Position numbers and translations under genes: made by a program. A stretch of DNA of 64,000 bases. Origin: Eutreptiella sp. 'Long Island Sound 2002'. Lineage: Eukaryota > Protista > Euglenida. Below, piece by piece: positions 1 to 53,000 of this stretch (position 1 is the first letter of the stretch; every line of letters starts with the position of its first letter). The stretch lies in assembly GCA_964036045.1 (NCBI GenBank), contig OZ038378.1:121334001-121398000 (forward strand), read 5' to 3'. The notes under the pieces were generated by a model that saw only the letters and a program-made list of their open reading frames with translations, was not told the origin of the DNA and ran no database searches.

Positions 1-3000
1 GACCGCCCCACCCCCGTGGTCCAAATTTGCGGGGCCTCGCTGCCTGGCAGGCGACCGCCTCCTGGACGGTGTGTCAGCTCGCGTGGCAACGGTTGTTTCC
101 ATGGCTCCAGGTGACGGTTTCCATGGTCCCTGATGCAGCCTGGCTGGGCTCAGACCAGGGGCCTTGGACTACCGCTTCTGCTACCAGCCCGGTGGGTCGG
201 CTGGGTCGCCCCAGTTCGTCCGACCCTTGGGGCGTGGGTTGTTGTGCCCTGACCCTCTGCTACCACGGGTGTGTACGTGTCCGCGGTATACCTGACCCCT
301 TAGCTTGCTTGTCCACCAATGTGCGCGTCCTGTGTGTTCTGTGCACGGTGTCTGTGGCCAAGTGGAGCTTGTTCACCGATGTGCGCGCTGTGTGCGCCTC
401 GCGCGTGGTGTTGGTTGCACCGTTGGGGTCCCCCCCCCTTTTATTTGCTTTTTTTTGTTGGTTGTTTGTTGCCTCTTGTTTTTTTTCCAGAGGAGGGGGA
501 AAGTTGAGGTGACGCGGGCACACTACAGGCACAGCCATGAACTGTTGGAGCAGCGGTGCGGCAGTGCTGCGTTCCTCTTGTGGTGTGCCTAGCTTGTGTA
601 TCCCCGGCGGCTGTGCCGTCTTGCGGCCGGTGATAACGCGTGTGGGTTGTGATGGGCGTTAGGAACGTGGGTTCTGGAGTCATATTTATGGGTCCGCTGC
701 CGGGTCTGGCGGTGATGGGGGTGGGCCGTGTTGGATGGCAGTGCTCCTGCAGTGCCCAGCAGGGCTGTGATTGGTGTTTGCGGCCGAGGGCTCTCGTTCG
801 GCCATCGGCTGTGGTGGCGGTGGGTAGGGGGGGGGGGTTGGACCACGGCTGTGGTTGTCCGGCTTGGAGCCCCGATCGTGCTGTCTGTGGTACGGTCCTG
901 CCGGGCGCTGGTTCGGGTGTGTAACGTGGCGATGGGTGTGGCCCTGGGCGGTTGGCGGCTGGGGTCTGGGTGTGTGTATCGGGGTCTGGCGTGATGGGTG
1001 GGCTGAATGCTGGACGTGTGGTGTGAATGCCCATGCTGGGTTGTTGGGTACGTGGGTGAGGTGGTGTTGTGGCGGTCGGCGTTTTGGCGGTTCCGGGTGT
1101 GTGCGGTGGTAGGCTTCTGAGTTTGGATCCTTGCAGGCGGTTGTAGGAAGTGTCGCTGGCGTGGGGCCCCCTAAGGCATCCTGCCGGATAAGGTGCGGGC
1201 GCCGCCGGACGGCGGGCGACGCGCGTCGTGCTGCCTGGCGCACGGAGGGCCTGGGCTGCTGTGCGTCAGATCTCCCGCAGGCGCTTCAGGACATGCGGGG
1301 CGTCCTGGGGTGCGGAGGGCTGGCAGGGCTGGATTTCCTGGGGATGGAGCGCATCGTCCAGCATGGCTTCCCATGCGTCCTGCGGCACCCATCACACCGC
1401 TGGCCTGAGCGCACGGTCCACCGTCAACTCCTTTCGGGGACGACCGAGCAGCCTCCGAGGGAAGACTCCGCGCGGGCCCATCTCTGCAGCTGCCATAGCT
1501 GCGTATGGGTCTAGTGCTGTCTGGCGCGGGGGTTGCCGGGGCTGCTCTGCGTCAGGATGGATGTGGTCCCTGAAAATGCTCATTGAAGCCACACAGTTGA
1601 CCCAGGAAATCCTTTCCAATGGCATGCTGTTGTCTGGGGGAGGTTCGCTGGGAGCTGGTCCATGTTGGCCTCTGGGTAGCAGCTGCGACCCGTGGAGGCT
1701 ACACGGTGCAGTACGGGGTCTACGACAAGGTGCCTGCCCCGTTCGACGGGGAGCACCCAGATGCGGTCTCCTGCGGGGGGAGCGGGCGTTCGCAGTTGAG
1801 CATGGCGAGTGGGGGTCGCTCCCGTAGGACGATGTGCAGGAAGGTGTGGAAGAGGAAACCTCGGACGCCTTGGCCCAGGATGGCCGCCTTGGTTGAGGCT
1901 GGCTGCCCGGACTGGCTGGCTGGTGCTTGAGGACCCGAGATGCAACACCCCCTGGGGCCCGTCCACAGCCTTGATGCGCTGCCGTACCGTGGGGAGGTTG
2001 TGGAGGGAAAAAGTGGCGGGAGCTTTCGGGTGAGGGGGTGTCCCTTGGTGGTCGCCGGAGAGGTGGTTGGCGGACGGATGCGTTTGTAGGAGGTGGGGGT
2101 GCTGGAGGCTGGTGAGTCTCCTCGTGCTGTGAGTCGTGCTGGAGACTTGGGTGCAGGGGGAGGGCGTGTGGGGGTGGCAATGCTTTGGCTGGGGGTTTGT
2201 TCTTGTGCGTGGTCTTCGTGTGCGTCACACAGGTCAGGCGTCCCCTGGCTGGCCGTGGTGTTTGGCAGGTAGATGCAGGCCTGGGATTCTTGGTGCAACT
2301 GCAGTTTGCGGCGGTGTGCGGTTGTAAATGCGCGGTGTCTGGGGGCAAGGACTACTGTTCGGGGGGTTGAAGGTGGTGGTGGGACGCGCCGTGTGCCCAG
2401 GGCGGTGGCATGTTCTGGCCTCTTTGTTGATACTGCGCGTGTATGGCCCCTTGTGAACCTATCGGGGCGCATGGCGGCCGGACTATCCTGGGCCCGTGCT
2501 CCGGGGGTGGCAAGTGGTGCTTGGTCGCGTGGTCGTGGTGGTGTGGGTGAGTTGATTGCTTGTGGCGCCACCGCACTGGCAGGTACGGTAGCATGGGCTG
2601 GTCGTGGTGGTAGGTGTCAGGGTGGTGCTGTGCGATGTGCTGGTTGCGTGGCCTGCAGACACTGATTGTGCTGGAGTGTGATGGTGACGGACCTGGTGGA
2701 CTGAGCTGTGGTATTGGGGCACCGGGATGCCGGGGTCTGGGGTTGCGGGGGTGTGTCGGTGCTACTGGTGGTGCCATGGTCCCTGGCCTTGCAAGAGCGG
2801 CGCTCCCTGTGCGGCATGGACTTGTGAATGCGGCCTTCCCTGTGCGGTGTGTACTGGGTGCTGTTGGTGCCGGGCCCGGGTGCTGTGGTACTGTGGTGGC
2901 GGTGGGCGCTGCAGAGGGTGTTGTTGGCTGCGTTCATGGGGGCCCTGGAAGTGTCATATTGCGATGTGGCTGGCGGCATGTCTCGGTTGGGGCCTGTTGG

Positions 3001-4340
3001 TGCATCCCTCGGCCTGTTTTTCCCATTTGGTCTTGCGCGCGTCAGGGGCCAGCTGGTCCGCCGTGGCCCCTTTGACAGTGACTGGGCGCTGCCGTGCCAG
3101 CAATGCGCCTCTCTGAGGCATGTCTCGAAGTCCCTGATGTAAATGCAGTGGTTCACGGGGCCCAACTGTCTGGTGGCCGCTTTGCTGGGGGCGGCTAGGG
3201 GCCTCAGCTGTGAAAAGGGGAAGGTGTGCCTGTAGTGGAGCTCTTTGAGGGGCTAGGGCTTTCCTCTCAGCCAGCAACAAGCAGGCGCGCCAGAGGTAGT
3301 GCGCCACCTCCTGCGGCACCGTCTCTGCCCAAGCATCCGGTCCCAGGGCCGCTATGTGGGGGGTTGGGGGCCGTGGGACAGGGAGATGGGGGCTGCGGTG
3401 GTGGAGTTGGGGGACAGACCGCCACATTCAGGCGACCTCCGCTGTGGCGTAGAGGCGGGCTGTGGGGGGGAACGGGTATTTTGCCAGTGGCCATGGCAAT
3501 GGCCGATGTTTCATCCACCGTGTGCGCCGCGTAATGTGCTCTTAGGTAGCCCTGCAGGTCGTCGGTGAGGAACCCGAAGAGGCTGGGTCGGCTGGCAGGG
3601 GGGGGAAACGGCTAGGGCTGCGGGCTGCGTGCTGTGGTAGGGGTGTAATTCCCCAAACTGGGGGCAGCGGGCCAGGCGCTGCGTGGCCCCGAGGCAGACC
3701 CAGTGGCTTCGGTTGCAAGGCAAGGCAGTTTGTGGCAGCCGTAAGCGTACACAGAGGGGGCATCTGGTGGCGGCGGTCCGGAGTGCTGTGGACGAATGGT
3801 GGCGTTGGGGCATGGGGACTTGCAGTGTGTGCATGCTGGCGGGCGCTCATGTGTGCCTCTGGTGCATGTGTGTGCTGCATCACCGTTGTATGTGGTGGAT
3901 GGGGCGCCAGCAGGGGGGGGGGGGTCCTTGCGACGGGCTTGAAGGGGCACTACGGTTGGTGGAAGAGGAGTTTGAGGAGCTGGACCTGGTCCGTCGGGTG
4001 TACGGTGGCCACATGTTGTAGGTACATGTGGGTGCCGTATATGATTTGCGTGGCCGCTTTAATGAAGGCCGTCCGTTTCATGTGTCCTGCTGTGGCTGGG
4101 GGGTCTTCGGCGTGGTTGCTCAACAGGGTATAGATGGCGGTCGAGACAAGCCCCCCCCAGACTGTCTCTAATACCTGTTTTTGCCGGCGGATGGGGGTGG
4201 GTTACCGAAAGGGGGGGACAAGGAGGGCGCAAAAAAAAAAGAGACAGAGAGGGCGGGGGGGGGCAAGCACAAAGGGCCGAGGCCAAGGGCACCCAGGGTC
4301 TGAAACAACGGAAGGGCGCGGATAAGGGGGGCGCGAAGGA
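1..4340 (-). mobile_element. Family A element, copy A1 (non-LTR-like, degenerate coding cargo, 3' end just outside window)
   Basis: 1-860 matches 15130-15968, 37600-38500 (opposite strand) and, over 1-about 600, 46260-46960. 1165-1510 matches 8345-8780 and 36900-37335. 1572-2140 matches 10553-11212. Orientation is taken from copy A4, which has a (CCTA)n tail and a 14-bp TSD. The 5' limit is approximate. Confidence 0.7.
3511..4135 (-). pseudogene. Degenerate N-terminal cargo ORF of family A with RING-finger-like motif
   Basis: 3650-3765 reads CPLC-x11-C-NRS-H-WV-C-LG-A-TQRLAR-C-PQ-F, a C3HC4-like spacing with two ligands substituted. Stops and frameshifts lie nearby. Confidence 0.4.
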
Positions 4341-14862: not shown

Positions 14863-15968
14863 GTACGTAGGTATCTTTGGGAGCTCAGAATGCCTCCTTC
14901 GACAAGACAGGAGAAAGGTCTTACCAAGGAGACGTCCTGTCCCTGCCACTGCCCTACGTCAGGTGCCTGTTGGGCAGCTCCTGCAGGTACTTGGGAAGGC
15001 AGTGTTGCGGGCACCCAGGTGTCCCCACATGTGTGTGTGAGTAGGGCCACATTTCCCCTCCCTTGGGCGCGAGCTCTGGAAGGCTTCCCAGCCGTTTGGA
15101 GTAACTCTCACTGGAGGGGATATTGCTCCCGCGCCTCACCCCCGTGGTCCAAATTTTCGGGGCCTCGCTGCCTGGCAGGCAACCGCCTCCTGGACTGTGT
15201 GTCAGCTCGCCTGTCACTGGTTGTTTCCATGGCTCCAGATGACGTGTGCCATGGTCCCTGATGCAGCCTGGCTGGGCTCGGACCAGGGGCCTTGGACTAC
15301 CGCTTCCGCTACCAGCCCCATTGGTTGGCTTGGTCGCCCCAGTTCGTCCGACCCTTGGGGCGTGGTTTGTCGTGCCCTGACCCTCTGCTACCCTCGGTGT
15401 GTACGTGTCCGCGGTATCCCTGTCCCCTTGGCTCGCTTGTCCACCAGTGTGTGCATCCTGTGTGTTCTGTGCACGGTGTCCGTGGCCATGTCGCGCTTGT
15501 TCACCGATGTGCGCGCTGTGTGCGCCTTGCGCGTGGTGTTGGTTGCATTGCCGGGGTCCCCCCCCTTTTATTTGCGTTTTTTTGTTGTTTCTTCGTTGCT
15601 TCTTGTTGTTTTTCAATAGAGAGGAAAAGGTGAGAGGACGCGCGCACACTACAGGCACAGGCATGGGCTGTTGGAGCAGCGGTGCAGCAGTGCTGAGTTC
15701 CTCTTGCGGTGTGCCTACCTTGTGTATCCCCGGCGGCCGTACTGTCTTGCGGCCGGTGATAACGCATGTGGGTTGTGATGGGCGTTGGGAACGTGGGCCC
15801 TGGAGTCGAATTTTTGGGTCCGCTGCCGGGCTTGGTGGTAGTGGGGTTGGGCCGTGTTGGATGGCAGTGCTCTTGCAGTGCCCAGGATGGCTGTGGTTGG
15901 TGTTTGTGGCCGGGGGCCCTCGATCGGCCACTGGCTGTGGTGGCGGTTGGTAGGGGGGGGGAGTTGGA
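14863..15968 (-). mobile_element. Family A, copy A3 (3' end) joined to B1 integrase
   Basis: Begins GTACGTAGGTATCT, homologous to the GTAGGTAGGTAGGTATCT tail of A4. Matches 1-860 and 37600-38779. Confidence 0.75.
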
Positions 15969-16700
15969 GTAGGGGCCGACAGCTCCTGGTAGGTCATTCA
16001 GACCCCAGAGCGCCATTGGCAGCGCCTCAAACCAATTACCCGGGCGCTCCTCCAGAAAACGCCTAAGGGCATTGACCACCGCCTTTACCGCCACATCTGC
16101 CCTCCCCCTGCTCTGTGGCCTATAGATCACCCGCTGATGCTGCTCGATTCCGCTTTGGGCACAGAAAGTTTTGGAAAACTCGGAGGTAACCAAGTGATCA
16201 TTGTCCGAAAGAATCTCACGCAGGATCCCCATGAAAGAAACAAAGCGCTCCAGAAAAATGCGCGCCGAATTGGCGGCATCCAGCCCCTTCTTCCGGGTTG
16301 GGATGACTATAATATAGCCACTCAGCCTACACACAACAATCAGAGCGGAATGAAAATTCTGTCTGTCCACCTTGACAGAATCTAACTCCACAAAATCCAT
16401 GGAAACACTTGAGAAAGGGGTGGAAGTAATTGGAAAGTGCTCCAGTGAATCAGTGCCGGACCTGTTCGGCGCTTTGCATGAGTGGCACACTCTACATTGG
16501 GCAAAGGCTTCCGCAATCAGCTTTCTCGGAGAGAAGGGGAATAAAAAGCGGCGGCAACACAACACATCCAGCTTGCGCTCGCCCGGATGGCTGTACGCAT
16601 GCATGGCAGCAAGGACAGCTCTTACCAAGCACTCGGGCACCAGCAGCTTTCCTGGAAACCTAATCTTCCCTTTATACAAGGCGAAGCTTCGTACTTACTC
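15969..16700 (-). pseudogene. pol: Lineage C integrase (HHCC + DDE core), truncated at junction with A3
   Basis: HAYSH...CRVC, SMDF, LSDND, QSRGRADVA, WFEALPMAL in ORF 15501..16679. Integrase sequence stops at GPYS near 15969. Confidence 0.9.
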
Positions 16701-17170: not shown

Positions 17171-18614
17171 CTAACTCCCTCCCCACCAATATTCCCCGCG
17201 CCCGATCAGCATGCTCCTGGGCCACAAGGCAGGATATTTGATTAGCCAGGTGTGGTCCTCTGACCACTTTTCATCGTGAACGTCGCGTTCGACCCCAGCC
17301 AAATCCTCCTCGCTCCCATGCATGCAGGCGTCAGGGGCATGCTCGCAAGCTTGATAGGCCCAGCGGCTCATGGTGTCCGCCCCCACATTATCCTCTCCCT
17401 TCCTATATTCCACCTCGAAGTGAAATTGGAAGAGGAACTCATGCCATCGCCCTCTGCGGCGGACAGGGCCGCTGATGGACCCAGGGTCCTCGCGAAACCA
17501 ATGGACCCGAGCCTGATGGTCTGTGCTGGCCCTGACAGTCACCCCAGACTGAATCAAGCTGCAGAGTTTGTCGAGCGCAGCCACAAGGGCATACGTCTCC
17601 TTCTCCCGTACCCCAATCTTATGCCGCTTACCACTCCTATCCCCCTTTTTCTTATTACTCTCCAGACCCGTCAGTGCCTCAGAGAGTATTGCTGCATGCA
17701 TAGCATAGTTTTTCATGTACATCGCATACCATTGCGTCAGCCCGAGGAATGCTTTGAGATGAGTGGGCGTCACGATATGCTTGTGATCCCAGCGCTGAAT
17801 GGCCGCGCGTTTATCCGTCGCGGAAAAGGGAATGCCATGCTGCAAGATATGGACACAGAATTTTTTTCGCGTTTTGAACAGGAACATTTTCTCACGTTTC
17901 ACAGTGAGTTTATAACGACTAAGAATGTCACAAAAACGCCGCAAATCAATATATTGCGCTAGCAGCACGTCAACCGCCACTTCAGTTACCTTTCTCGACA
18001 GTTCTGGGGGTCCCGGGGTACCTCCTGCACTGTCAGAGGGGGGGGGGCTGGCGTCCCTGCCAGCATATTGTCGATATACGGCTTCACACTGTTCCAAACA
18101 CCACTGTACCATACGCTGGTACTGGGGTTGGGCTGTTTTCAGCCCCAGGGGGAGCACGTGCCATTCATAGACTCACCATGGGGTCATTAATGGACTAGGC
18201 TAACAGCATTTGATGAAAACCGTCTTCAAGGTCAAAAATTGAGCAGATGAAGTTTTTGCCTTCCTCTAAAGTTTTGTCCTCTATATACGGCAAGGGGAAA
18301 GTAAAGTCTTTGATTTGGGAGTTTAGGTGGCGGTAGTCTATCACTAACCGCCACTTCCCTCCCGGCTTGGGGACCACAAAGGCCCGGCTAATCCATTGTG
18401 GATTTACCGCATCTTGTAGCATGCCCCGGGACTGAAATTTGTCCAAAAGCGCTTTAAATGCTGCAGCCCGCAACCCAACACAGCAGTACGGTACCGCTTT
18501 CTGTGGCTGTGCATCTGGTTTTTGGATTATCGTCCCGACACCATCAGGACCACGATACGGGGCCTCCGTGTGTGGCTTAAACATCAACACTTCCCCATAT
18601 TCCTGCTGAATCAT
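17171..18614 (-). pseudogene. pol: Lineage C reverse transcriptase + RNase H (frameshifted)
   Basis: AFVVPKPGGKWRLVIDYRHLN, DLEDGFHQ, MLPLGLKTA, YIDL (YIDD site), LKAFLGL, EKETYALV, TDHQ, EYRKGEDNVGADTMSRW. Confidence 0.92.
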
Positions 18615-18759: not shown

Positions 18760-19130
18760 TGAAAAAGCAGCAAGTGCCAACCATCAGACCTGTGTACCGG
18801 GGGGCCTTTTGACGATTCAAATTTTTTTTTAGGTTGGTATATCCCACTAATCCAGAGACACCCCGCCCAAGGCCCAGAACCAGGCCTGCTCCCTCTTTAC
18901 CGGCAAATGGATGGCCCCAACTGCCCCATCGAGGAGGACTTTATCCACTGTGTGCTTGTAACAGTGCTGCGGTGGGCATAAGAACATCATATTCGTGCCC
19001 CAACACTGTTTGAAGCCATCCTGCTGACACCCCCAAGAGGTTACACGTGGGCCAGGCACAGGACGTCGTCCCGCTGCGAATGGGTCGATGTATCTCCTTC
19101 TCTCAGGCTCACCTGACCATTCTTTGACGT
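18760..19130 (-). pseudogene. Dam-like (N6-adenine DNA methyltransferase-like) domain inside lineage C pol
   Basis: YIDPFA...DGFKQCW-GTNMMFLCPP...VDKVLLDGAVGAIHLPV...AWFWAL, resembling the DLFA...W...YxxPP...KI...W pattern of DIRS/phage Dam domains. Lies between PR and RT. Confidence 0.6.
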
Positions 19131-20329
19131 CATTCAAAAAATCGGAAGACACAGACAGGCCCTTGGAGTTCTCCCTGAGGCTCTTTCGGACTCCAGCTAT
19201 CTTACGTGCTGGACGCAATGGGACCTGACACCAGGAGGCATCAGGGGACATCTCAGGTTTGCCCAATCCCAGCGCATCATCGAGGTCCTCTGACGTGGCC
19301 TCCGTCGAGGAACCTGATGCGTGCCCTCGAGAAAAACCTCACCCCCCACATAACTGGTCAGGGGCTCCCCAAAAAACATCAGAGTGCACCGACTCCGCGT
19401 CAGAGATCCCCTCAGATTTTCCATCACTATCCGTCATGCTGCAGGCCTCACATGCCCGTAATTTAACCCCCATAGGGTGAGCCGCGTCTGCAAAAAATTG
19501 GCTGACCAACTCAGGACGTCTGTCTATCTCACTTGCAGTCAAGGCGCATAATTCGGCGCAGCCACACTGGAGCCTGGTAAGCGGAGGCTCCTGCTCAGTA
19601 AGTCCTGTGGAGCGGACCTGTGCACTCTGATCCGTTTCCCCTGACATGCAAAAATCACAGATATGCTTGTCACAGGTGAAGAACCCCTGCCCTGCAAGGG
19701 TAGCAATTTTTCTCTCCTCAGATTTCTGCGGTGACTCAAAAGCCTGTCGTAACTGCGGCTGCAGGCTCTGCATCATGGGCTTCATGGCTGCACGCACAGG
19801 GCTGCCCCCCCCCTGGCTGTGAAGCCCCGACTCCGGGCCTCAGAGGTGGATTCCATGCGTCCGTACGACCTGCCCGCAGACATTGATGCTTACATGCACA
19901 CCTGGTGGCACATTGACAGTGAAACGCTCTGCCATTATTCAAACCCAGTTGCCGTTCTCACCTGAAGGCAGGCATGCAGTTCCCATAGTGACACACCAAG
20001 GTAGCAAAAACACAGCAAAAACAGAATGCAGAGCAAGGCAGCCAGTTTGAAAAAATTGCAAAGGGGAGGAAGGCACACTAATGCCCCCCCCCCCAAAAAA
20101 AACCTGCCAGTGTCATAGTCAGGACTTGTGGGATTCCGCAAGGGCACAACATGTACCCGTCCCACAAGTCCTGAACTGCTCTCTGTCACTCCGAAGTCTG
20201 TTCATGTCAATAGTGATGCTCTTCCGTGTCAATATACAAGACACCAGGGGACACAGCACCAACTAATAAGCAATCAGGAATGGCCATTGCCAAATGAGGT
20301 CGTTTGCCAATCCTCCTTCTTAAACAAAT

Positions 20330-20530
20330 GCCGCAGGGCAGTGACACAAGAGTCCCCCAAGGCTGTCACAGATAGGCAGCGACACTGTCACCAATGTTCC
20401 AAGTTTGCCCCCTGTCACTCCCCTGAGTTGACCGTCTCCCTGGTCCCCTGCGAAAAACACTTACGACGGGCAACAGCAAGAATGGAACACCCTGTGTCAA
20501 TCAGCGCCAAGACTTGGTGCGCAGAGCCGC
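20330..20530 (-). pseudogene. pol: Lineage C aspartic protease
   Basis: Reverse complement of 20461-20520 reads HQVLALIDTGCSILAVARRK (DTG motif). Confidence 0.85.
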
Positions 20531-20699
20531 CAGAAAATCTGACAGTGACTCACACTATGAGCTTCGACCTTAACAAATACGACCATCCTGGCCCCCGTCG
20601 GCCTCAGCCGCCACACCCGTGCCCTACTCAGGACACGACGCGGCTCAAGCGTGCAACAGCACGGGACTTGGCTTTTGGGCGGGGACGCCACAGTTACTC

Positions 20700-23016
20700 C
20701 CTGACACCCTTAGTTCTTGCTACCAGCCCTCCCAGACTGATCCTTGCCTGAAGGGTCCAGTTTCTTCTTAGAGGGGCAATCCTCTTGTAGGTGTCCCTTC
20801 TGACCACAGTTGTGGCATCCACGTCCCTCCCCCAAAGAAACCGCACGAGCCCCCTACTCCCTCACCCCGGGGTGTTCGCGCGGGTCCCGTGAGCATCAGG
20901 TGCCCTTGGGATGTCTATGCTTACCGCAACGGATGCAATCGCGTTGCTTCCACCTGTCAAGCATTTGCTTTTTTCGTTGCGGGAACTGCTGCAACACCTT
21001 CTGGAGCCAATCGCACTTCTCAGGATATTTCAAATAGCAATTATCACTGGAGTGTTGTCCCTGACAGTGTGTGCATTGAGGCCGGTCTTGCTGGTCGCCC
21101 TTTGTGTTGCGGTACCCCGGTGCTGACCTGGTTCGGCGAGGTCTGCCACCCTTACCACCTTCAAGCCTGTTTACAGAAGAGGTCCCCTGGCGGTACCCGT
21201 GAATGGCATCAACCCGCCGAGTGGTCAGCAACTTAGGAAAGATGAAATTATGGGCTTCCATGTACGTGTACTCACGCCCTCGGGGCTCCTCTTCTTCGAC
21301 CAAGTCTCTCAGGGGTTCTTCATACTGGCCCCCTGCCCCGCTAAGTTCTCGTCTGTATCGCCTTTTGGCGTCGCTATGGTGAGCTCGCCCAACCTAGCCG
21401 CCTTGACACACCAGGAAGTGAACCACCTCCTATAGGAAAGGACATCATCCCCATCAGGAGTACTATCCTCCCAATCGTCTCCAACCACATCCGGATTAAC
21501 AAGGTCCTCCCCTTCTGCACTCAGGATACCCCAGACGTCCTTGTATGACCACCCGAGGTAGATCATGCATTCCAGGAAACAGTGGGCCTCTTTCTCAGGA
21601 ATGGCCGACAAAAGAAGAATAGCTTGGACATCCGAATCGAGGGGACTACCAAGAAGATCTAACCATTGACTGCATTCAACGGAAAAATTTGCCAATAGAG
21701 CATAGTCTCCATTCCAAGTCGGCCGTTTCATGAACCTGTGCATATTTTTACGAGCCTCCTCGTCAAGAGACTTGAACTCCTTATCATCTCCCGTCCCCGC
21801 AAAAAGTTGCCGAATGGTGGCACTTACTCGCCCCCTCACAGCGTCATCATCAGAGGAGTCCTCCAGGGACTCTAAGAAAGGGAAAAGTGCACGTGTTTGT
21901 TGGACCTTGTCCTTTTGGGCTTCAAAGGCCATCGTATGTGTCCGGCCTGGTACCGGCAGTGGGTGGATGGGTGCCGCCGATCCGCGCAGAGAGGGGGGAC
22001 GCAGTTACCGTCGCCAAACCTGTGACAGGTCTAACCCGTGGCTCACGGAACGCAGCGTCCCTGCCCCTCAGTAACTCCAAGCGCCCTGCGCCGGTCAACA
22101 GAGACTTGAGGACGCTGTCAACTGCCGCTGTTGAAGCGACCGCGGTTGTGGTTTCCTCACACCCAACCTCGTCATCAGCAAGGGAAATTTCTTTTTATAC
22201 ACTGTCATGTCAGCATGCACCGACCTTGGTTGTTTCATGCATACCATGGTCCTCATCGTCCACAGATGGTCCCCGCGACTCCAAGTCTACGGAAAGGCAG
22301 GATTTGTTAACCTGGCACCTGAGTGTGCGCACGCTCTCACCCAACGCATCCACATCCTCCACCAGTTCGGGCAAATCAATGTCCACCCATTCATCTTGCA
22401 AGGCCTCAATTTGTTTTTCACACTCAGCAACCCGTTCTTCCCGTGAAAGCACTCTCGCGCACACGTCACCATACCAAGTCCCAGACAATTGAAGGAGCAA
22501 CAATTGCTGTGCACACGTACGGAGTTTTGCTTCCATGGTGACGCCTATCATCTCCTAGGAGGGCACCAATTGTTCAATGAAATGCGTCGAGAATTCGCGA
22601 TTTTTTTCAAAGGCCAAACAACATCATGGAGTTTGGCATCAATGCATGGACGCCATTTTGTGTCGAGCGACGTCAAATCGCTCGTGACCGAAAGTTAATG
22701 TGCCTCAAACTTTTTTAGCAACTCATGCATCGCGAACCGCTCATCTGCACCAACCGTGGGTAGTGAGCTACTCGTAGAGCTCGTTCGTTCGACCGTAGCC
22801 GCCTCGACCTTAATTCATCTTATTTTCAGAACATCCACGTACACAACAACACGTTGCAAATCTTTTCTTACCTCATGCACCATGTCATGCATTTCCTCAT
22901 TGCGAGTGCAAACCTTGTGGATTCCCTCAAATACGCGGGTAATGGTTCCGAACTTCTCTCCATTCTGTTTTGCACCCGCTTCGATGGCTAAATGACATGA
23001 TGCAACGTCGTACGAA
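20700..23016 (-). pseudogene. gag: Lineage C gag (coiled-coil N-part, capsid-like region, zinc knuckles)
   Basis: Canonical CHNCGQKGHLQEDC at about 20770-20815, plus CTHCQGQHSSDNC and CIRCGKH in ORF 20896..21303. Capsid-like ORF 21309..21932. Upstream helical segments contain stops. Confidence 0.8.
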
Positions 23017-23779
23017 GTAAGTAAGTAAGTAAGTTAAGTAAGGGCGGCGGCATCCGGAGCCTCATCTGACATCTCCTTGTTTGTTTTACATGGTGGCCGC
23101 CTCTGGCGGGAAGGAGAGCTCTCCACCATCAGTTCCCCTGGCGACCCCTGTCTCACCTCACGGCCGAGAACTCCAACCAGGTTCCCTTGGGGCATGACCG
23201 GCGGTAGGCTCCCTTCAGTCACTGCCCTCACGGTTCCAGCTCCTTCCGGTCACCCTTTGAAGGATCCCCCGGCCTTCCCCCCCTAGCACAGCCTATTGGG
23301 CGCCTGCAGGCGGGTTCCCTGTGGATAGCCCCCGCCAACAGCGGAGCATTTCTCTCTGTCAACCACATTCCACCACTCCCCATCCCTCACGGGTTCGAGT
23401 AACCACTCGTCTCCCGGATGCACTTGGGTGTCGTCCATCCACGGCTGGAGGCCAGGGGGCGACCCTTTCCACGTTCCCCCTCGTCCCGCTCACGCGTGAA
23501 CCTACGTGTACTCAGGCCATTGACCCGGGGATCTCAAGGTCAACCCTCACCCCTGCGGACACCTCACGGCCGTCCCGGAGTTCAGGGCATTTTCCTGACT
23601 TCCCGTGGTCAGGTTCCCCATGGTTGGCCCATGGTTCACCACTCCATGGCGACTCGTTTCCCAATCCCATGGGGCTGTTGCTTGGCGCTTTCGCTCTCCC
23701 TGCCCATCCCATGTCCCTTTCCCCCTTGCCTCATCCCGGCACCGGCCTGTTCCCAGCGTCCCATGGACTCCCTACCCCG

Positions 23780-24330
23780 TCGGGCCGTTGTGCGGCCCTA
23801 GCCACACGCCCTTCCCTGCCCCGTCCCCTTGTCCGATCTTCCCGTGTTTATACCCCACCGGGTCGCCAGCAACCCTGTGGCGCGGGCCCACTGGATCCCC
23901 TTCCATCTGGGGACCGCTTCGTGCGCCTAGCACGGGTCGCTCCCTCCCCGCCCCCGTCCCTTTCCCCAGTGCTGCGACCCAGCATAATTTCCTGGGCTGT
24001 AGTGCGGCCCCATCCCATCCCTCATCCCGTGTTTATTCCCCACCGGGCCGCCAGCAACCCTGTGGCGGGGGCCCACTGGATCCTCATCCATTGGGGGACG
24101 GTTTCGTGCGCCTAGCACGGGTCGCTCCCTTCCCGCCCTTTTCCCCTTTACTGCGGCCCCGGCCTAATCCCCTGGGCTGTTGTGCGGCCCCATCCTATCC
24201 CTCATCCCGTGTTTTTACCCCACTGGGCCGCCAGCAACCCTGTGACGCGGGCCCACTGGATTCTCATCCATCCGGGGACCATTTTGTGCGCCTAGCACAG
24301 GTCGCTCCCCTCCCGCCCCCGCCCCTCTCT
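23780..24330. repeat. Three tandem copies of a 180-185-bp unit
   Basis: GCCAGCAACCCTGTG at 23865, 24050 and 24230. Confidence 0.9.
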
Positions 24331-24399
24331 CCTGTGCCGCCTCCCATGCTGTCCTAGTCCCCTGGGGCCATCCCCTGGCCCTAGCCACACGGGTCCGGG

Positions 24400-25900
24400 T
24401 TCTATGTGCCCATCTGCCTCTCATTCTTCTCAGTCTCCTCTCGCTTCCCGCCTCTTGCTCTTCTTGTCCTCGTTCTCCCCCTTCCCCGGTTCTTGTACTT
24501 GCTCTCATTGCTGTTTCTTGCCGCCGCCGCTTCCCCTTCCTCCTGGAGCCCAAGACGCTCTTATCCAGGGCCGCCCGGCCCCCTGGATGCTCCGGTCCGG
24601 GTGCGTTGCTTCCCTAGTTGTTCCTGTCCGGGTTCCACGTGTTTGGCCGCTTTTCCATCTGCTCCTTCCCCTCCCGCTTCCTGACTCTCTTTCGTCGTAT
24701 CCTTCCTCATCTGGTCCTTGCCCTTGTTCATGTGCTCCTCGCCGTTGTTCTCCGCTACCGTATCCCCCTCCTCTCGCAGCCCAGGACATTCCAATCCCAG
24801 GCCGCTGCTTCCCCGGACGCTCCAGTCCCGGGCCTCCGCCCCCCGGATGTTCGAGTCCAGGGGTTGTGCTTCCCCGGATGTTGCAGTCCGGGCTTCACGT
24901 GTTTGCATCTCCCTCTCCTCCCCCTTCCCTTCTCTTGCTCTTCTCGTCCTCTCTCTCCACCGACCCTGACTCTCGTGCACGCAGCCCTTACCCCTTGTCG
25001 ATTCTTGCCGCCGCCGCTTCTTCTTCCTCCTGGAGCTCCGGAGGCTCCTTTCCATGGCCGCCTCGCCCCCGGATGTACCTGCCCTGGTGCGCTGCTCCCC
25101 CGGTTGTCCCCGTCCGGGTTCCACTTGGCTGACCGCTCTTCCTTTTGCTCCTTCTCCTCCCACTTCCCTTCTCTCGTCCGTCTTGTCCTTCCCCATCTGG
25201 TCCATGCTGGTCCATGCTGTTCACGTGCTCCTCGTCGCTTCTCCCCGCGGCCATTTCCTCCTCCTTCTGAGGTCCCGGACGTTCCACTCCCGGGCCGTTG
25301 CCTCCCCGGACGTTCCAGTCCAGGGCTTCCGCCCCCGGATGTTCCAGGCTGGGCGCATTGTTTCCCCGGACGTTCCAGTCCAGGGCTTCCGCCCCCGGAT
25401 GTTCCAGTCCGGGCGCATTGTTTCCCCGGATGTTCCAGTCCGGGTTCCGTGCGCCTGCCTCCCCTTCTCCTCCCCCTTCCCGTCTCTCGTTTTTCTCGTC
25501 CTCTCTCTCCACCTTTCCTGACTCCTGTTCATGCACTCCTTTTCGGTTCTTGCTGCCGCCGCTGCTCCTTCCTCTCGGAGCCTCGGCCGCTCTCGCTTGA
25601 CGATCTCCTGTGCCGCCCCGCTCCCAGTTGTTCCTGACTGGTTGCGTTGCTTCCCCGGTTGTTCCCTTGAGGGCTCCATGTGTTTGGCTGCTTCACATTC
25701 TTCTCTTTCTCCTCCCGCTTCGCATCTTCTCTCCTTCTTGTCCTCCCCCATCCGTTCCTTGCTCTTGTTCTTCTTCTCCTCTCCGTGTCTCTCCGCCGCC
25801 GTCTCCTTCTCCTTGTTTGTTGCCCCGGACATTCCATTCCCGGGCCGCCTCGTCCCCGGACGTTCCAGTCCGGGTGCGTTGCGTCCCCGGATGTTCCAGT
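24400..25900. repeat. Degenerate higher-order repeats: CT-rich spacers with clusters of CCGGA(C/T)G(T/C)TCCAGTCCGG motifs
   Basis: Motif clusters at about 24580, 24785-24895, 25270-25445 and 25820-25915, separated by pyrimidine-rich homologous blocks. Confidence 0.8.
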
Positions 25901-27120
25901 CCGCGGCACTGGGTGCACCTCCGGACAATCCAGTCCGGGGGTTTGGGCCTTGCTCCTGTCCGCCCCGGATGCCCCAATCCGGGGCGTCTTTTTGCCGTAT
26001 TCACTCCGTTGCCTCGGATGCTCCAGCCCGTGGCCCCGGGTTCCCCCCAGACAATCCAGTCCGGGGGCCTCTGCCGTGCTCCACTCCGCCCCGGATGCTC
26101 CAATCCGGGGCGTCTTTTTATCGTATTCTCTCCGTTGCGTCGGACGCTCCAGTCCGTGGCTCCGGGTTCTCCCCCGGACGATCCAATCTGGGGGCTTGGG
26201 CCGTGCTCCACTCCGCCCCAGATGCCCCAATCTGGGGCGTCTTTTTGTTGTATTCTCTCCGTTGCCTCGGACGCTCCAGTCCGTGGCACTGGGTTCACTC
26301 CCGGACGATCCAGTCCGGGGGCTAGTGCCGTGCTTCATTCCGCCCCGGATGCTACAATCCGGGGCGTCTTTTTATCTTATTCTCTCCGTTGCCTCGGATG
26401 CTCCAGTCCGTGGCACCCGGTTCACCCCCGGACGATCCAGTCCGGGGGCTAGTGCCGTGCTTCATTCCGCCCCGGATGCTCCAATCCGGGGCGTCCTTTT
26501 ATCGTATTCTCTCTGTTGCCTCGGACGCTCCAGTCCGTGGCACCGGGTTCTCCCCCAGACGATCCAGTCCGGGGGCTTGGGCCGTGCTCCACTCCGCCCC
26601 GGATGCTCCAATCCATGGCACCTTTTTGTCGTATTCTCTCCGTTGCCTCGGACGCTCCAGTCCGTGGCACCGGGTTCACCCTCAGACGATCCAGTCCGGG
26701 GGCTAGTGGCGTGCTTCATTCCGCCCCGGATGCTCCAATTCAGGGCGTCCTTTTATCCAATTCTCTCCGTTACGTCGGATGCTCCTGTCCGTGGCACCCG
26801 GTTCACCCCCGGACGATCCAGTCCGGGGGCTAGTGCCGTGCTTCATTCCGCCCCGGATGCTCCAATCCGGGGCGTCATTATATCGCTTTCTCTCCGTTGC
26901 CTCGGATGCTCCGGTCCGTGGCACCGGGTTCTCCCCCGGACGATCAAGTCCGGGGGCTTGGGCCGTGCTCCACTCCGCCCCGGATGCTCCAATCCGGGGC
27001 GTCTTTTTGACGTATTCTCTTCGTTGCCTCAGACGCTCCAGTCCGTGGCACCGGGTTTACCCCTGGACGATCCAGTCCGGGGGCTCGGGCCGAGCTCCAC
27101 TCCGCCCCGGATGCTCCATC
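25900..27120. repeat. Tandem array, 127-bp unit, about 9.5 copies
   Basis: Unit anchor (GGATGCT or variant) at 25967, 26093, 26220, 26347, 26474, 26601, 26728, 26855, 26982 and 27109. The period is 127 from 26093 onward, and each unit holds three related hairpin motifs. Confidence 0.97.
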
Positions 27121-27124
27121 CATC

Positions 27125-28242
27125 GCCGATCATTGTTTTCACTCGTGAGTCAAAATCATCCATTGCGGCACGTCACATCATGCAATAAACTTGACTCTTT
27201 TGTTGCAAAAGGCTCACATACCGTGACAACGGGCCTACGAGCTGTCTCGATCGCCTTACATTCGATATTTTCACATGACTGATGTACAAATGTCTTAACA
27301 AACGAAGTTAACTCATGCACACTTGAATCAATTCGTTTAATGCACACACGCCTGAAATCATTCATGCAAGAATCAAAATGTCGGCGTTGTTCATGCGATA
27401 AGGGCTCAACAATATCATGAATTAAAGATGCATGTGATTGAAGATGATTCTCCACAGGTTGTGGAATTTGCGAAGCAAGCACGGGAACATTTGTTTCACA
27501 ATATTGTCCCGTTGCCTTAATTCGTGCCTTCAAAACATCGTTACCCGCCAAATGTTGTTGCATGTGCTTATGTTGTTGGCCAAATTGGCCATGCAATTGG
27601 ATCACTTGGCCACGGACGCTCCCTATGATTTGCGTTGCTGACCTGCACATTTGTTCTACTCCTTGCACGGATGCGGCTTGAACCTCCTTGTGAACAAAAT
27701 ATTGTTGTGGGTAATCTTGATGCTGTTCGAGGTGTTGCTCAAGACCCTCAATACGTTGCAAACGCTCCTCATGTCCTTGCAACCCTCGACTAATGTGCCC
27801 TTGGAGTCCCTCACATTTGTTGCTGGCATCGATATTTCTATTGATATCCCCATGGCGTCTTGCAAATACCCATGCACTTGTGTCAATTGTGCAATGAGTG
27901 TATCTACCTTGTTGTTGAGCTCCTCCTTAATTTGGTGAGGAGCTTGTGGCTCGCGTGTGAGCGTGCGCCACCTTTAGAATATGCGACCGCCGTCTTCAAT
28001 CCTAATCTGTTCATGGCGAGCCTCACCAAACCCACACTCCATGTCTGCACTACTGCTTTCTGACTGTTGGAAGGGGCGTTCGGGTTCACGGACGGAAAAT
28101 TCCCCATGTCCACGATGATCCCATGGACTAACCATGCTCTGTCCTCGTGCCCATAACCTTTGAATGGTGTTTGGTGTCGAATTACTTGTCGAAACCAACG
28201 ACATCTTGATACTCGCAAAAAGAATTGAAATCGTTCAATCAA
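27125..28242 (-). pseudogene. Degenerate coiled-coil ORF, probable 5' part of lineage C gag
   Basis: ORFs 27156..27782, 27656..27886 and 27904..28242 are Q/E/H/L-rich and helical, with the same strand and composition as 22210-23016. Confidence 0.45.
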
Positions 28243-29329
28243 TAATCAAATCAAATTGAATTGTTCAGAGTGGGCTCATAAAACTCTCGCAGAACTTCAA
28301 AAAGACGATGCTACCCTAAGGCAGAGATAACAGCGGCAACTGGGCGATCACAAATCCGGCAGAGCAACAAAGCCACGTCGGGAAATTAAATCCAAACCCC
28401 AGAGGGGACTGTGATGGAGGGGACAGTACAGACCCATAGAACAAACAAACGCGCATCAGCCTGCATTCTAAAATCCAACGATTTGCAAATGAATCCGAAC
28501 TACAATCTCTAGGTCCACGTCAGCCCTATCTAGTGCCATAGGCAAATTCTAGGGTCCAATTTGGTCAGGTCCTGCTGGTCTGCTGGCCTCTTACCGCGGG
28601 CAACACGGCCCACAAAAACCCTGAAGCCGAATCCCGCCCCCACCGCCCCGAGAAACGCCATTACCCCGCAGCCCTGCAACCTGCTACCGATAAAGTCTGG
28701 CAGCAATGCACCACAGCAAAGCCTGCACCCGCAGCCCAGCCGAAGCTTTAACCTGCCCACTACCAAGCAGCAGCCAAAACCCACAACCAAACCCATTCCC
28801 AAGCTCAAGCCTGGCACTGAGCCGGCATCCCAGGTCGAACCCTAAACAGACCTCCTCTACGACCGCCAGCCCCTGCGTCCAAGCGCCCAGCAGCAGCAGC
28901 GCCCGCCACGATTCCCCTCTCGCCATCAGTGACGCCGCCGCCACCAGTTGTATGGTACAACACGCCACGGCAGAGGTGCGACGCGCCTCATCCCCATACA
29001 AGAAAAAACCGGGATATCGGACCCGCAGGCCAGGCCCCCCCCGCCCGGGCCGGAGCAACACCAAGGGCTGCCAGTGGTGCCCCAACCCCCATACGAACCC
29101 CCAATGTCTGCCCATGTCCAGTACATGCGCGACTAGTGCCGCTACCTCAGGACCCACAATAACCCCGAGGCAGAGTGCTTATACACGTGTCAGTGTGTTT
29201 CCGTGCGCTCACACCCCATGGTGATAGAAGTGACCGCTTCTCACATAGCCCCCTGGTCCAAACTGATTCAAATGAGTTTCAAAGGCGGTGTTTGAATCGA
29301 CCTGAACTACGTTTGAAGCATGTTTGAAT

Positions 29330-36415: not shown

Positions 36416-38779
36416 AGGAAAATGGTGAAGAGGAACGTGGAAAACAAAAAAATGAGGATCCCAGAAAAACTGGTGCTAAAGCGGTCCTGATTGCATGTCA
36501 ATATCGCGTGCAAATCGTCTGCGGTCGCCTGAAAAATTGCAAAACTTGCGAAAAGTGCAAAATTTGCAACAGAATGCGACAGGCTCCTGGCGGCGCACGG
36601 CGGCGGCGGCGACGGCGCTCCGCGTTTGAATCAATTTAAATAAATTCAACTGCCCCATTTGAATTTTTTCGATGGTTCAAATCATACAAATGCGGTTCAA
36701 ACAGGGTCCCGTAGCATGCGGTCAAGTCAGTCATGATGCCACCCCGCTGACTTCCGGCACAGCCCCGGGGCGCTGCCGCCAGTGCCCGCCACACCACCAC
36801 GCACACTGGTACCTGCACTCACACCCAGGCACAGGCCAAAGGCCAACGACCCGCCAATAGACCGTCAGGGGGGCGCTGTACCCATACGCAGCTGTTGGAG
36901 CTGCGGAGATAGGCCCGCACGGAGCCTTCCCTCGTGGGGCTGCTCGGTCGTCCCCGCAGGGAGTTGACGGTGAATCGTCCGCTCAGGCCAGCGGGGGAAT
37001 AGGTGCTGCAAGAAGCATTGGAAGCCATGCTTGACAATGCGCCCCATCAACAAAGAATCCAGCCCTGCCAGCTCTCTGCACCCCAGGACAACCCGCATGT
37101 CCTGAAGCGCCTGCAGGAGATCCTCCAGGCGGCGCGGAAGGGACGAGAGTGCCTATAGTACATATTTCCAAGCCCGCACCCAGTCACAGACACCTCCCAA
37201 CACGCTGCACAGACACGGGCTGCACCGGCACCGCGGTGACACACAGCAGCCCGGGCGCCCCGGGCGCCAAACAGCACGATGCGCACAGCCCGCCGTCTGG
37301 CGGCGCCCACACCCTATCCAACAGGATGCCTTAGGGGGCCACGTGCCAGCGACACTCCCTGCAACCGCCTGCAAAGAGCCTACCACACGACGAGCACGGC
37401 CCAAACACCAACAACCGCAACACGACCAGGAACACCATCCCACCCACATACCCAACCACCCAGCATGGGCATTCACACCACATTCCCAGCATTCAGCCCA
37501 CCTATCACGCCAGACCCCGATACACACGGCCAGACCCAAGCCGCCACCCGCCCAGGGCCACACCCATCGACACGGTCCACAGCCCAACCAGCGCCCGGCA
37601 GGACCTTAGCACAGACACCACGATCGGGGCTCCAGGCGGGACAACCACAGCTGTGGTCCAAACACCGCCCCGAACCCACTGCCACCACAGGCGGTGGCCG
37701 ATCCAGAGCCCTCGGCCGCAAACACCAACCACACCCATGCTGGGGACTGCAGGAGAACTGCCATCCAACACAGCCCACCCCCACTACCGCAAAGCCCGGC
37801 AGCGGACCCGAAAATTCGACCCCAGGGCCCACTTTCCCAACACCCATCACAACCCACAGGCGATATCACCGGCCGCAAGACGGCACAGCTGCCGGGGATA
37901 CACAAGCTAGGCACACCACAAGAGGAAGGCAACACTGCTGCACCGCTGCTCCAACAGCGGAGGCCTGTGCCTGTAGTGTGCGCACGTCCTCTCCCCTTTT
38001 CCTCTCTTTAAAACAAAACAAGAAGCAACAAAGAGACAACAGAACAAGGCAAATAAAAGGGGGGGGACCCCAACAATGCAACCAACACCAGGCGCCAGCA
38101 GCACAATGCGCGCACATCGGTAAACAAGCGCCAAGTGGCCACGGACATCGTGCACAGAACAAACAGGACGTGCACAGTGGTGGACAAGCAAGCCAAGGGG
38201 CCAGGGAAACTACAGACACGTACACACCCAGGGTAGCAGAGGGTCAGGGCACAACAAACCACGCCCCAAGGGTTGGACGAACTGGGGCGACCCAGCCAAC
38301 CCACCGGGCTGATAGCAGAAGCAGTAGTACAAAGACCCTGGTCCGAGGCCGGCCAGGCTGCATCAGGGACGATGGCAAATGTCACCCGGAGACATGAAAA
38401 CAACCGTTGACAGGCGAGCTGACACACGGTTCAGGAGGCGGTCGCCTGCCAAGCAGCGAGGCCCCGCACATTTGGACCACCGGGGTGAGGCGGTCGTACC
38501 ATAGACGCGCAGGGGCAATATCCCCTCCAGTGAGAGTTACGCCGAACGGCTTGGAAGCCTCCCAGAGCTGCCGCTCCAAGGAGGGGAAATGTGGCCCTAC
38601 TCACACACACATGTGGGGATACCTCGGTGCCCGCAACACTGCCTTTCCAAGCACCTGCAGGAGCTGCTCAACAGGCACCTGACCTAGGGCAGTGGCAGGG
38701 ACAGGACATCCCCTTGGTAAGACCTTCATCCTGCCTTATCAAAGGAGGCATCCTGAGCTCCCAAAGATACATAGCTACC

Positions 38780-50039: not shown

Positions 50040-53000
50040 CCGTGTTGGGTGACGAGAATACCTGGGAGTACTGGGGACTGTGGCCACTATATCTATTGTA
50101 GCCAAGAAGGTCTTACCTTGTGGGGACCTGAAGAACATCATACCTACTGCAGCCATTCGCATGGGAACTGGTCATGTGGTGCACAGTTGTTGGGACTGCG
50201 GGGTCAACATACCTATAGGATCAAGGAGCATTGCCCATCGGTTCTACGCGATCAACATCGAAGCCATCAACTTCCTACAGGGGACTGACTTCTTCGTCGA
50301 GCACTCCCAGATTCTATCCCTCACGCTGCAAGCACCCTACGTCCTCTAAGTGGACCATGGTGATGGAGGGGAATCTGTACCACTGGTGCAGTCTGAGACT
50401 CGTCAAGCTACCTGACTGTATGCAAGAAAGAGCCCTCTACCATGACGGTCGCCTCCAATTCTGAGGACTTTCAGCTCCATGGGGATGTCCTAGACCAAGG
50501 CCTGAAGGAGTTGCGCACCTCGGGTCAAGACCTTAACGTGGAGCTATTCGCCAGCGACAAGCAACATGTCTTGGACCTCTACTGCAGCAAGGGGAGAAAT
50601 TGCTGCTACAAATCTTACTGGCCCCCTTTCAGGATGGCTTACGGGACCCAAGGTTCAGTAAACTGGGGAGCGTCTTCACCATGGTGGCCCTGGAACGTTC
50701 CCGCATGGACCTGTGTTCCCCTGATTGGGGAGCCCATGGGGGACATGAGTGCTGGCGTACTCTGTTGGATAAGCTGACGCTCACCTCCGTCCAGTTACCT
50801 GATGACGCCATCTACGTGCCTCTGGGCCGGAAGACGCCCATTGGGAAGCCCGGATGGGGGAGTATGCTTAGTGTGGTGGACAGGGGTCTGACCCCTGTGC
50901 CCTGGGAACATCTGGACCCAGCTATTGTCCAAGAAATTCAACGTGAGAGCGACGGCTACACCCTGAGTGTCCTGAAAGATGGACTACGGCTACGGAAGCC
51001 GACTACGGATGCTGTGGAGACTACTCTAGGGGGGAACAAATACGTCGTCTCTGACACCACTGCCCCAAGATCCCCCTGCCATGTACCTAATTTTGATGTA
51101 GCTTCAGATTAGTGGCCATCTCAGCTGCCCAGCTTAATACACTCTGATGACAAAACCGAGCACGACGACTTCTTCGTGCTGACATGCGTGGAGGAAGTGA
51201 AGAATGCTGGGTACGCTGCCCCACAGAAGTTCGTAATCTCCATGAGGGGAGGGGAGCCTTTGGGCGGGGGGTTGGACCCCTGATCCCGGCTGAGGCAGTA
51301 CGTGGATTCGAAGAGGAGATTGGTGGCGAAAAAGCTATGCTACGCTAAGCCTAGCCCGTTGTTCATGGCCGTTGAAACCAGGGTCTGTGGGAGATATCTC
51401 CCAACCGAAGGAGGACCTAGAACGGAAGATCATTACCTGGCAAAGGGAAGTGAAACTTGAGCTCATGAAGAGTGTATGGGGTTCCCATGGGAGGACCCCA
51501 GAGGAAGATGAACTCTGAGAGGAATGCGTATGCCAACCCCCTCGAGCGTGCCTCTGCTGCCAGGGGCCACCTGAGATTGTGGAACGAGCCTTCTATACGC
51601 CTTTCAAGGTTTGAAGGATAGTACCAAGGAAGCTGGGCCAGTTGAAGATCACATCCCTGCTTCTTTACACCAAGGGGCAAGCAATCTACCCTCTGAAGAG
51701 GATCTGGAGGACAAGATCAAGCTCTTGGACCACGGAGTACAGAAGCTGATCAGGACCTACCTGGAGGTGTTCTAAGAACTACCCCCTCGAGCTTCCTGTG
51801 ACAAGCTAGTACAGATGGACCTGAAGCTGTAGCCCGGCTTCTTGGGTCACAAGATACGTAAGACACCCTACCCGGTGCCTAAAGAGCGGGCCGATGAGGT
51901 TGAGCGACAGATCCAAGGGTGTATCGACGCTGGCCTGGTTCTTGACTACAAGGATGGGGACTATCTCCAGGATTGCAGCTGCCGTTTCCTGTTGGCTAAG
52001 CCGGGGTCCACAGCCAAACCGCTGGTGATGGACTACGGAGAGCTGAAGAAGAAGACGCTGAACCACTCAGGGTCCATTCCTAGCATTGAACCAACTGTCG
52101 AGAAGATAGCCTCCTGCCGCTACAAGATGAAGATGGACAAGCGGAGTGGATTCTGGCAAGTGGACCTGACGCCAAATGCTCAGGAGCTCCTAGCCTTCGT
52201 CACCCCTCAGGAGAGGGTGTTCAAGTCGAAGGTCACGCCTTTTGGCGTGGCGAACGCAACCACTCAGTTTCAAGAGCTGATGAACAAGATCCTGTCAAGC
52301 CTACCCCGGAGACCTCTGTTGTAAGAACTCATATTCTGAAGCGCCCAGATGGAAGCACACATCGACGATCTATGCCTCGGAACGAAAACTCAGAAGGACA
52401 ACCTAATCCTCTTGGGTGAGTTCTTTGCGGTCTGCGAGGAGAACCACACCAGACTCAAGCTGGAGAAGTGTGAGTCAATGCAGGAGACTATGCAGTAGCT
52501 GGGGTGCAACATTGGCTACGGGTGGTGGACCCCTGCGGCCTCTAAGGCCAAACACCTGATGCATGCTAAGATACGACATGAGGACTCCAAGAAGGGACTC
52601 CATGATGTACGTACTTTCATTGGGGTCTGCAACTTCTACCGCCGCCACATCAGAATTTCACCTACACCAGCGCCATCTTGACAGACTTCATCAAGAAGAG
52701 TACTACCTGGCGCAGGGGCCCTCAGGAACAACAAGCGTTTGAGGAGCTCAAGGACAGAATGGCGACCGCTAAATACCTGGGAGTGCCTAGGGTACAGGTG
52801 AAAATTATCCTCGGAACGGACGCCAGCAATGCCCGCGGAGGTGGAATGTTGTTCCAGTGGCAAGCACTAGAGAAGGAGGAGTTCGACTCGGCCATTTCTC
52901 AATGGGGGACTGATTGACTGAACCGAGGCGGTACCCTCAAGCACAGCCACCCTCACATTAAAGGAGTCCTGGTTCCCCTGGGTCATTGGAACTGGAAATG

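Follow-up and report, generated by a model that had tools for sequence, protein, structure and literature searches.

The 64,000-nucleotide stretch of Eutreptiella sp. DNA analysed here (the window) contains a copy of a gypsy-type retrotransposon, lineage C, for which a preliminary description proposed a domain resembling DNA N6-adenine methyltransferase (Dam) between protease and reverse transcriptase (RT), with the same domain in two other gypsy lineages of the window, B and D. The locus therefore raises the question of whether this domain derives from Dam, whether it could still methylate adenine, and how it came to be kept. DAM-LTR retrotransposons, including a Euglena gracilis DAM-LTR/DIRS group, were described in May 2026 (Fernandez-Moreno et al., bioRxiv 10.64898/2026.05.21.726589). 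In general terms the phenomenon is therefore already in print; what lineage C would add is a cryptic Dam-derived domain that lacks the motif and is under selection. We consider it probable that the Dam-derived domain of this dead Ty3/gypsy copy has lost catalysis, has been retained under selection for a non-catalytic role and has been inherited vertically together with the RT.

The element in the window and its intact relatives

The lineage C element lies on the minus strand in the order gag, protease, Cys-rich linker, Dam-like domain, RT, RNase H and integrase (Table 1). Aligned to an intact relative, the window element is a 3'-truncated Ty3/gypsy copy, about 10% diverged. Between window 28585 and 15966 it is colinear with the intact copy on C12 (89-92% nucleotide identity). 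It carries at least 11 in-frame stop codons from the protease through the Dam-like domain, and ends inside the integrase, with the 3' end and 3' LTR absent. No LTR pair was found flanking the window copy; the 3' LTR was lost by this truncation. The foreign insertion, the deletion in RNase H, the truncated integrase and the many stops together establish that the copy is dead.

Table 1. Features of the lineage C copy in the window, with landmarks of the Dam-like domain
Feature	Position	Strand	Basis
5' LTR	28314..28585	-	blastn vs 268-bp LTR of reference copy (C12), 89% identity
5' leader and gag start	27122..28313	-	reference 2660-4121 vs window 28585-27122, 91.4%
4.1-kb foreign insertion, tandem-repeat-rich, interrupting the element	23017..27121	.	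gap in colinear reference alignment; 127-nt and other repeat families
Remaining gag with CCHC zinc knuckles (ORFs 21309-21932, 20896-21303)	20696..23016	-	colinear with reference gag ORF; zf-CCHC in reference gag
Aspartic protease, active-site LIDTGCS (DTG 20490-20498), frame broken	20250..20560	-	translation; weak Asp_protease_2 match in intact relative, aa 48-147
Linker with Cys-rich stretch	19270..20249	-	no Pfam match; stops at 20119, 20113, 19939, 19840, 19339
Predicted Dam-derived (PF05869-type) domain, ~120 aa	18850..19221	-	profile comparisons, fold model
IDPFA	19075-19089	-	translation
Motif-I-like IDPFAAG	19069-19089	-	translation
FKQCW	19000-19014	-	translation
MFLCPPQ (holds degenerate motif IV, CPPQ)	18967-18987	-	translation
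VDKVLLDGAVG	18916-18948	-	translation
AWFWAL	18868-18885	-	translation
TAG stop, after ...GVSLD	18847-18849	-	translation
Reverse transcriptase core	17833..18374	-	RVT_1 match; mapped from intact relative aa 787-973
RNase H remnant; ~233 bp of reference deleted at 17612-17615	17425..17612	-	RT_RNaseH match, reference alignment
Integrase (H2C2 zinc finger and rve core), ends at reference aa 1678/1891	15966..16634	-	rve match; alignment stops at 15966

The peptide quoted in the preliminary description is present exactly as given, with all of its landmarks on the minus strand in ORF 18847-19266; the C-terminal WWDIP part of the window domain is broken by the TAG stop and a frameshift. Its placement between the DTG protease and RT also holds, since ORF 18195-18614 matches RVT_1 and the later ORFs match RT_RNaseH and rve. 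Likewise, the claim that C has no nucleotide similarity to B or D was borne out by blastn and megablast within the window, neither of which gave a match, and tblastn of the C domain inside the window found no similarity to the B or D elements.

Three further features of this part of the window were recorded. The insertion that interrupts gag consists mostly of tandem repeats, among them seven copies of the 127-nt period (25908-26969) and GC-rich 60-nt units. The Cys-rich stretch between the protease and the Dam-like domain (19339-19797, minus strand) is kept in the intact family, has no Pfam match and may be a zinc-binding module. Past the 3' truncation, the sequence at 15501-15965 recurs at 37600-38120 (plus strand) and 376-860 (minus strand) with 60-70% identity and a proline-rich frame, and appears to be another repeat family.

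When the 139-aa ORF 18847-19266 was used to search the 2.28-Gb genome from which the window comes, it identified a family about 80% identical to it at the protein level. Many copies form part of open frames of about 1,890 aa (at least 8 in the C family). In the reference copy (C12), a 1,891-aa pol ORF (L017:1941-7616) shows RVT_1, RT_RNaseH, Integrase_H2C2 and rve, in this order, together with a weak aspartic protease match, and a CCHC knuckle lies in a separate gag ORF of 1,127 aa. Its Dam-like domain occupies aa ~525-641, between the protease (aa 48-147) and RT (aa 787-973) of a single polyprotein ORF. The two 268-bp LTRs of this copy are 100% identical and lie about 10.2 kb apart, so that the insertion is young, and the C family itself is young. 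The intact relative thus has LTRs, gag, protease, RT, RNase H and a DDE integrase in Ty3/gypsy order, and the window copy is colinear with it but broken.

Ancestry and inheritance of the domain

Direct searches with lineage C alone returned nothing. A Pfam scan found nothing at E<=1 or E<=10 for the window ORF or the intact C-family domain, neither of which reaches the PF05869 gathering cut-off of 28.1 bits; tblastn of the C domain or the intact relative against phages was likewise empty at E<=10, as was a search of PDB sequences with a profile of the clade alignment (E<=10). Public proteins contained only one relative of the C domain carried on a polyprotein of comparable length, a cluster 98% identical to it that has no Dam among its precomputed Pfam families.

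The connection to Dam runs through related lineages. Sister lineages score 12.7-22.3 bits against PF05869, and a single family, named here after its motif IV (NAPF), passes the cut-off with 40-45 bits (40.2 bits for the polyprotein). PF05869 is the top Pfam family for 6 of 12 clade members, and no other Pfam family recurs. The C query itself matches places in its own genome, at E about 1e-7, that coincide with PF05869 matches above the curated cut-off (for example C2:68830470-68830847 and C20:16009745-16010062). With hhalign, a C-clade profile of 7 sequences aligns to the NAPF domain over 114 columns (99.4%, E 9e-22). The NAPF domain in turn matches phage T1 Dam by tblastn (E 6e-4) and hits 752 phage records at E<=1; of the 15 listed, most are annotated as adenine or DNA methyltransferases. 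Broad-clade profiles match T1 Dam with 12 sequences (93.9%, E 1.5e-7) and with 26 (93.5%, E 2.3e-7), and both alignments place CPPQ of lineage C on NPPY of T1 Dam. The Dam link of C is transitive, because the C-clade profile alone does not match T1 Dam significantly (E 0.03).

The predicted structure points in the same direction. An AlphaFold2 model built from 26 sequences (pLDDT 82, pTM 0.75) places a beta-strand (MMFL), the CPPQ loop and then a helix in the canonical geometry of beta4 and motif IV. In an exhaustive structural comparison with VIA, the best 50 rows are all class-I SAM methyltransferases, with Z values of 7.8 for T4 Dam (rmsd 3.1 over 106 residues), 7.1 for E. coli Dam, 6.9 for PCIF1 and 6.5 for DpnM; values up to 8 are middling by the tool's own note, and the match list is homogeneous. 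The model is thus consistent with a class-I SAM-methyltransferase fold. Foldseek with the same model returned nothing at E<=0.001. An earlier model from 12 sequences (pLDDT 55), for which the Foldseek list was meaningless, was discarded in favour of the 26-sequence model. In the ESM Atlas, the neighbours of both C and D include one and the same PF05869-bearing cluster as well as unannotated eukaryotic clusters of about 150 aa, an agreement at the level of a lead.

From these comparisons, the C domain is homologous to PF05869 members, transitively and at the level of profile and fold, beyond what chance would give, and descends from the phage T1-type family of DNA N6-adenine methyltransferases. 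The absence of any direct Pfam, PDB-sequence or phage match for the C sequence or the C-clade profile alone is what would be expected if the stretch were a conserved, lineage-specific linker with a chance resemblance to Dam motifs. Given the strong E-values along the transitive chain and a structural match list made up of methyltransferases throughout, we regard such a linker as extremely improbable.

The preliminary description went further and proposed that C, B and D carry the same domain through an old, retained acquisition that defines a whole clade. We compared an RT plus RNase H tree and a Dam tree of seven intact representatives. The RT tree reads (D,(B,((L019,L016),(NAPF,(C,L018))))), with supports of 100/99, 95/95 and 99/98, and puts C in a strongly supported clade of lineages bearing Dam-like domains, with B outside. 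All seven representatives (C, L018, L019/L016, NAPF, B and D) hold the Dam-like domain in the slot between protease and RT. In the Dam tree no internal branch is supported, and there is no conflict with RT: L019 and L016 pair, B and D lie outside, and forcing the clade {C, L018, NAPF} on the Dam data costs a delta lnL of 0.13 (AU p 0.46, not rejected). The Dam data are therefore compatible with the RT topology, but the lack of resolution gives this congruence low power. L019:2275-9825 and L016:3642-9464 belong to two related gypsy lineages with polyproteins of 1,941-2,516 aa, in which a dUTPase (PF00692, E 1e-31 to 1e-37) precedes the Dam-like domain.

Lineage D is weakly linked. It has no Pfam Dam match, forms a very long branch in both the RT and Dam trees (about 2.3-2.9) and is not matched significantly by the C-clade profile (E 0.19). 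Broad profiles align to it in register over 64-87 columns (E 2.6e-4 to 4.4e-4, 34-42% probability), and D matches T1 Dam pairwise with E 0.008, so that a domain shared by D and C is plausible at the profile level.

Could C, B and D have captured their domains independently, from DIRS-like elements or from one another by recombination? The two strongly supported DAM clades of Euglena, in which DIRS and LTR members are mixed, suggest ongoing exchange of the domain (bioRxiv 10.64898/2026.05.21.726589); the extreme distance of D in both RT and Dam, its weak alignment to the C-type profile and the unsupported Dam tree would also allow separate captures. Nevertheless, the common slot in C, L018, NAPF, L019/L016 and B, the fit of the Dam data to the RT topology, and the recurrence in both trees of the L019-L016 pair and of B and D as outsiders all speak against it, and we judge independent capture rather unlikely. 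The evidence favours vertical co-inheritance of RT and Dam domain for C, its relatives and B, and the domain would have passed with the RT through a radiation of gypsy lineages in this genome. An old, retained acquisition thus fits the C clade well, with purifying selection on the domain described below, whereas its extension to the weakly linked, long-branched D is less secure.

Motif IV, selection and the question of activity

The catalytic tetrad of the family, (D/N)PP(Y/F/W), is replaced by CPPQ in all 12 C-family copies read. A wider sample, which included 20 small loci of the same genome (L047-L066), contained the canonical NPP[YFW] tetrad in 0 of about 19 gypsy lineages with a Dam-like domain, and His is the commonest residue at the Asn position (Table 2).

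Table 2. Motif IV in gypsy lineages with a Dam-like domain, beside CPPQ of lineage C
Lineage	Motif IV
C-related L041	SPGQ
C-related L042-L044	LPPE / LPQE
C-related L047 (broken copy)	FQQR
L018 family	HPPF
L053 / L055	HPQY
L048 / L056 / L063	HPPQ
L049 / L061	HAPK
L051	HPPP
L054	FPPT
L057 / L058	RPSR / HPSP
L059	HPPE
L019 / L016	HPPA / HPPD
L062	(H)NPPH
L065	CPQK
Pfam-positive family (L040)	NAPF
B (L039)	HAPR
D (L038)	NPRF

Around this variable motif, the rest of the domain is well conserved. In the alignment of 26 sequences F46, K92 and P105 never vary and W33, W72, G100, W112, G117 and D122 scarcely do, forming a scaffold of a motif-I-like DxF, a Lys, P105, W112 and WFWALGE..DWWD. Invariant scaffold residues beside a variable tetrad indicate that the scaffold is constrained while the catalytic positions drift; the alternation of CPPQ, SPGQ and LPPE among the sublineages likewise implies that the catalytic position varies freely. 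In lineage D, the copies at window 50442-51112 (plus strand) and at two other loci (L033, L034) have a common frameshift exactly at NPRF, a site that the D subfamily with a 1,642-aa ORF (L038) reads through; perhaps the lesion is peculiar to one subfamily and has propagated.

Selection was assessed by pairwise NG86 estimates of omega over about 105-114 codons, to be read with saturated dS and partly decayed copies in mind. Between C sublineages, including L041 versus L042, omega is about 0.2 (dN 0.26-0.47, dS about 2.2 or not computable), and for the reference (L017) or window copy versus L041 it is about 0.17-0.2 (dN 0.26-0.37, dS saturated at about 2.2). Between L017 and the window copy, the domain has an omega of 0.36-0.48, compared with 0.57 for RT, 0.51 for integrase and 0.58 overall. 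The near-identical L042-L044 copies give 0.4-1.2, as expected for decay after insertion. The domain is thus clearly non-neutral at the lineage level and under purifying selection between C sublineages, as the proposal of a retained domain had implied. It evolves faster than RT: the terminal branch of C is about 3.4 times as long in the Dam tree (1.05) as in the RT tree (0.31).

An omega of about 0.2 between sublineages despite the loss of the tetrad argues that the domain is probably a retained pseudo-methyltransferase. With the change of (D/N)PP(Y/F/W) to CPPQ, we infer, adenine methylation would have been lost in lineage C, and the polyprotein would keep the domain for a non-catalytic role; candidate roles are binding of nucleic acid or cofactor, targeting to chromatin or host factors, and a structural part in folding or processing of the polyprotein. 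The loss of the tetrad had escaped the preliminary description, and its term Dam-like therefore probably holds for ancestry and fold and not for activity.

The competing reading is that the domain remains an active adenine methyltransferase, works with a motif IV other than the canonical one (CPPQ; HPPx in relatives) and places 6mA on the element's own cDNA or integrated copies. Purifying selection and an intact predicted methyltransferase fold would suit an enzyme equally well. So would the motif-I-like loop, where D44 is nearly as constant as F46: the conserved DxF is compatible with retained cofactor binding and to that extent counts against a loss of function. The first Pro of the tetrad is also conserved in the C clade, and 6mA is enriched on E. 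gracilis DAM-LTRs (bioRxiv 10.64898/2026.05.21.726589). However, both the hydrogen-bonding Asn/Asp and the stacking aromatic residue are replaced. Within the C clade the Asn site is occupied by C, S or L (F in the broken copy) and the aromatic site by Q or E, a pattern typical of a relaxed catalytic site, and the lengthened C branch of the Dam tree adds to this. Canonical DAMs of transposable elements were themselves inactive in E. coli assays (bioRxiv 10.64898/2026.05.21.726589), a result that weighs against activity here and also means that the state of the motif may not be its sole determinant. On balance, we find continued methylation by the C domain distinctly unlikely, and retention without catalysis remains our preferred account.

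Whether the same applies beyond lineage C is a more tentative matter. Most of the domain-bearing gypsy radiation (C, HPPx, HAPx, FPPT, RPSR and others, many with ORFs >1,000 aa) might keep a Dam-derived domain that is unable to methylate, although we would not yet put this generalization on an even footing with its opposite. If true, the selected function of Dam domains borne by transposable elements in this host would be non-catalytic; it might lie in reading or binding chromatin or nucleic acid, or in bringing in host factors, AMT1 for instance. It would also challenge the proposal that Dam-bearing retrotransposons write 6mA on themselves and thereby mimic active chromatin (bioRxiv 10.64898/2026.05.21.726589), and would mean that screens based on HMM thresholds greatly under-count such elements.

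Comparison with known systems

The domain of lineage C resembles phage T1-type Dam over 86-95 aligned columns, which include the DxxA loop, the W-x6-beta4-motif IV segment, a Lys and the P...W helix, and a class-I methyltransferase fold is predicted for it. It differs from the phage enzyme in that only the central ~100 residues are common to both (63-163 of 237 in T1), NPPY has become CPPQ, and the C domain lies inside a retrotransposon polyprotein.

A methyltransferase-like domain in DIRS1-group retrotransposons was reportedly noted by Goodwin and Poulter, whose work the DAM-LTR study cites. Lineage C shares with this group a Dam-like domain carried on a retroelement. The DIRS elements use a tyrosine recombinase and have the domain after RT and RNase H, whereas lineage C has a DDE integrase (rve) and the domain before RT.

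For a domain retained without catalysis, we propose METTL14 as an analogy. METTL14, with EPPL in place of DPPW, is a pseudo-methyltransferase that stands beside METTL3. It too combines a methyltransferase fold under selection with a degenerate motif IV, but it belongs to an unrelated family, and lineage C offers no evidence of a catalytic partner.

The closest comparison is with the DAM-LTR elements, which also have a Ty3/gypsy-type polyprotein with a prokaryote-derived Dam (PF05869-type) domain, shortened relative to bacterial and phage Dam. In contrast to those, lineage C has no Pfam Dam match even at E<=10. The Asn-Pro-Pro triplet is conserved in almost all DAMs described there (bioRxiv 10.64898/2026.05.21.726589); lineage C has CPPQ, and the canonical NPP[YFW] occurs in none of the roughly 19 lineages sampled here. 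The screen of that study used hmmsearch with E<1e-5 (bioRxiv 10.64898/2026.05.21.726589), a threshold below which lineage C and most of our sampled lineages would fall. Screens with family models thus miss whole lineages, and both the reported distribution and the conclusion of a conserved catalytic pocket are possibly biased toward canonical members. That a young, successful lineage without the catalytic tetrad still conserves the domain suggests that the benefit to the element need not be methylation. The NAPF, NPRF, HPPF and CPPQ lineages of this one genome form a natural comparison set for the function of the domain.
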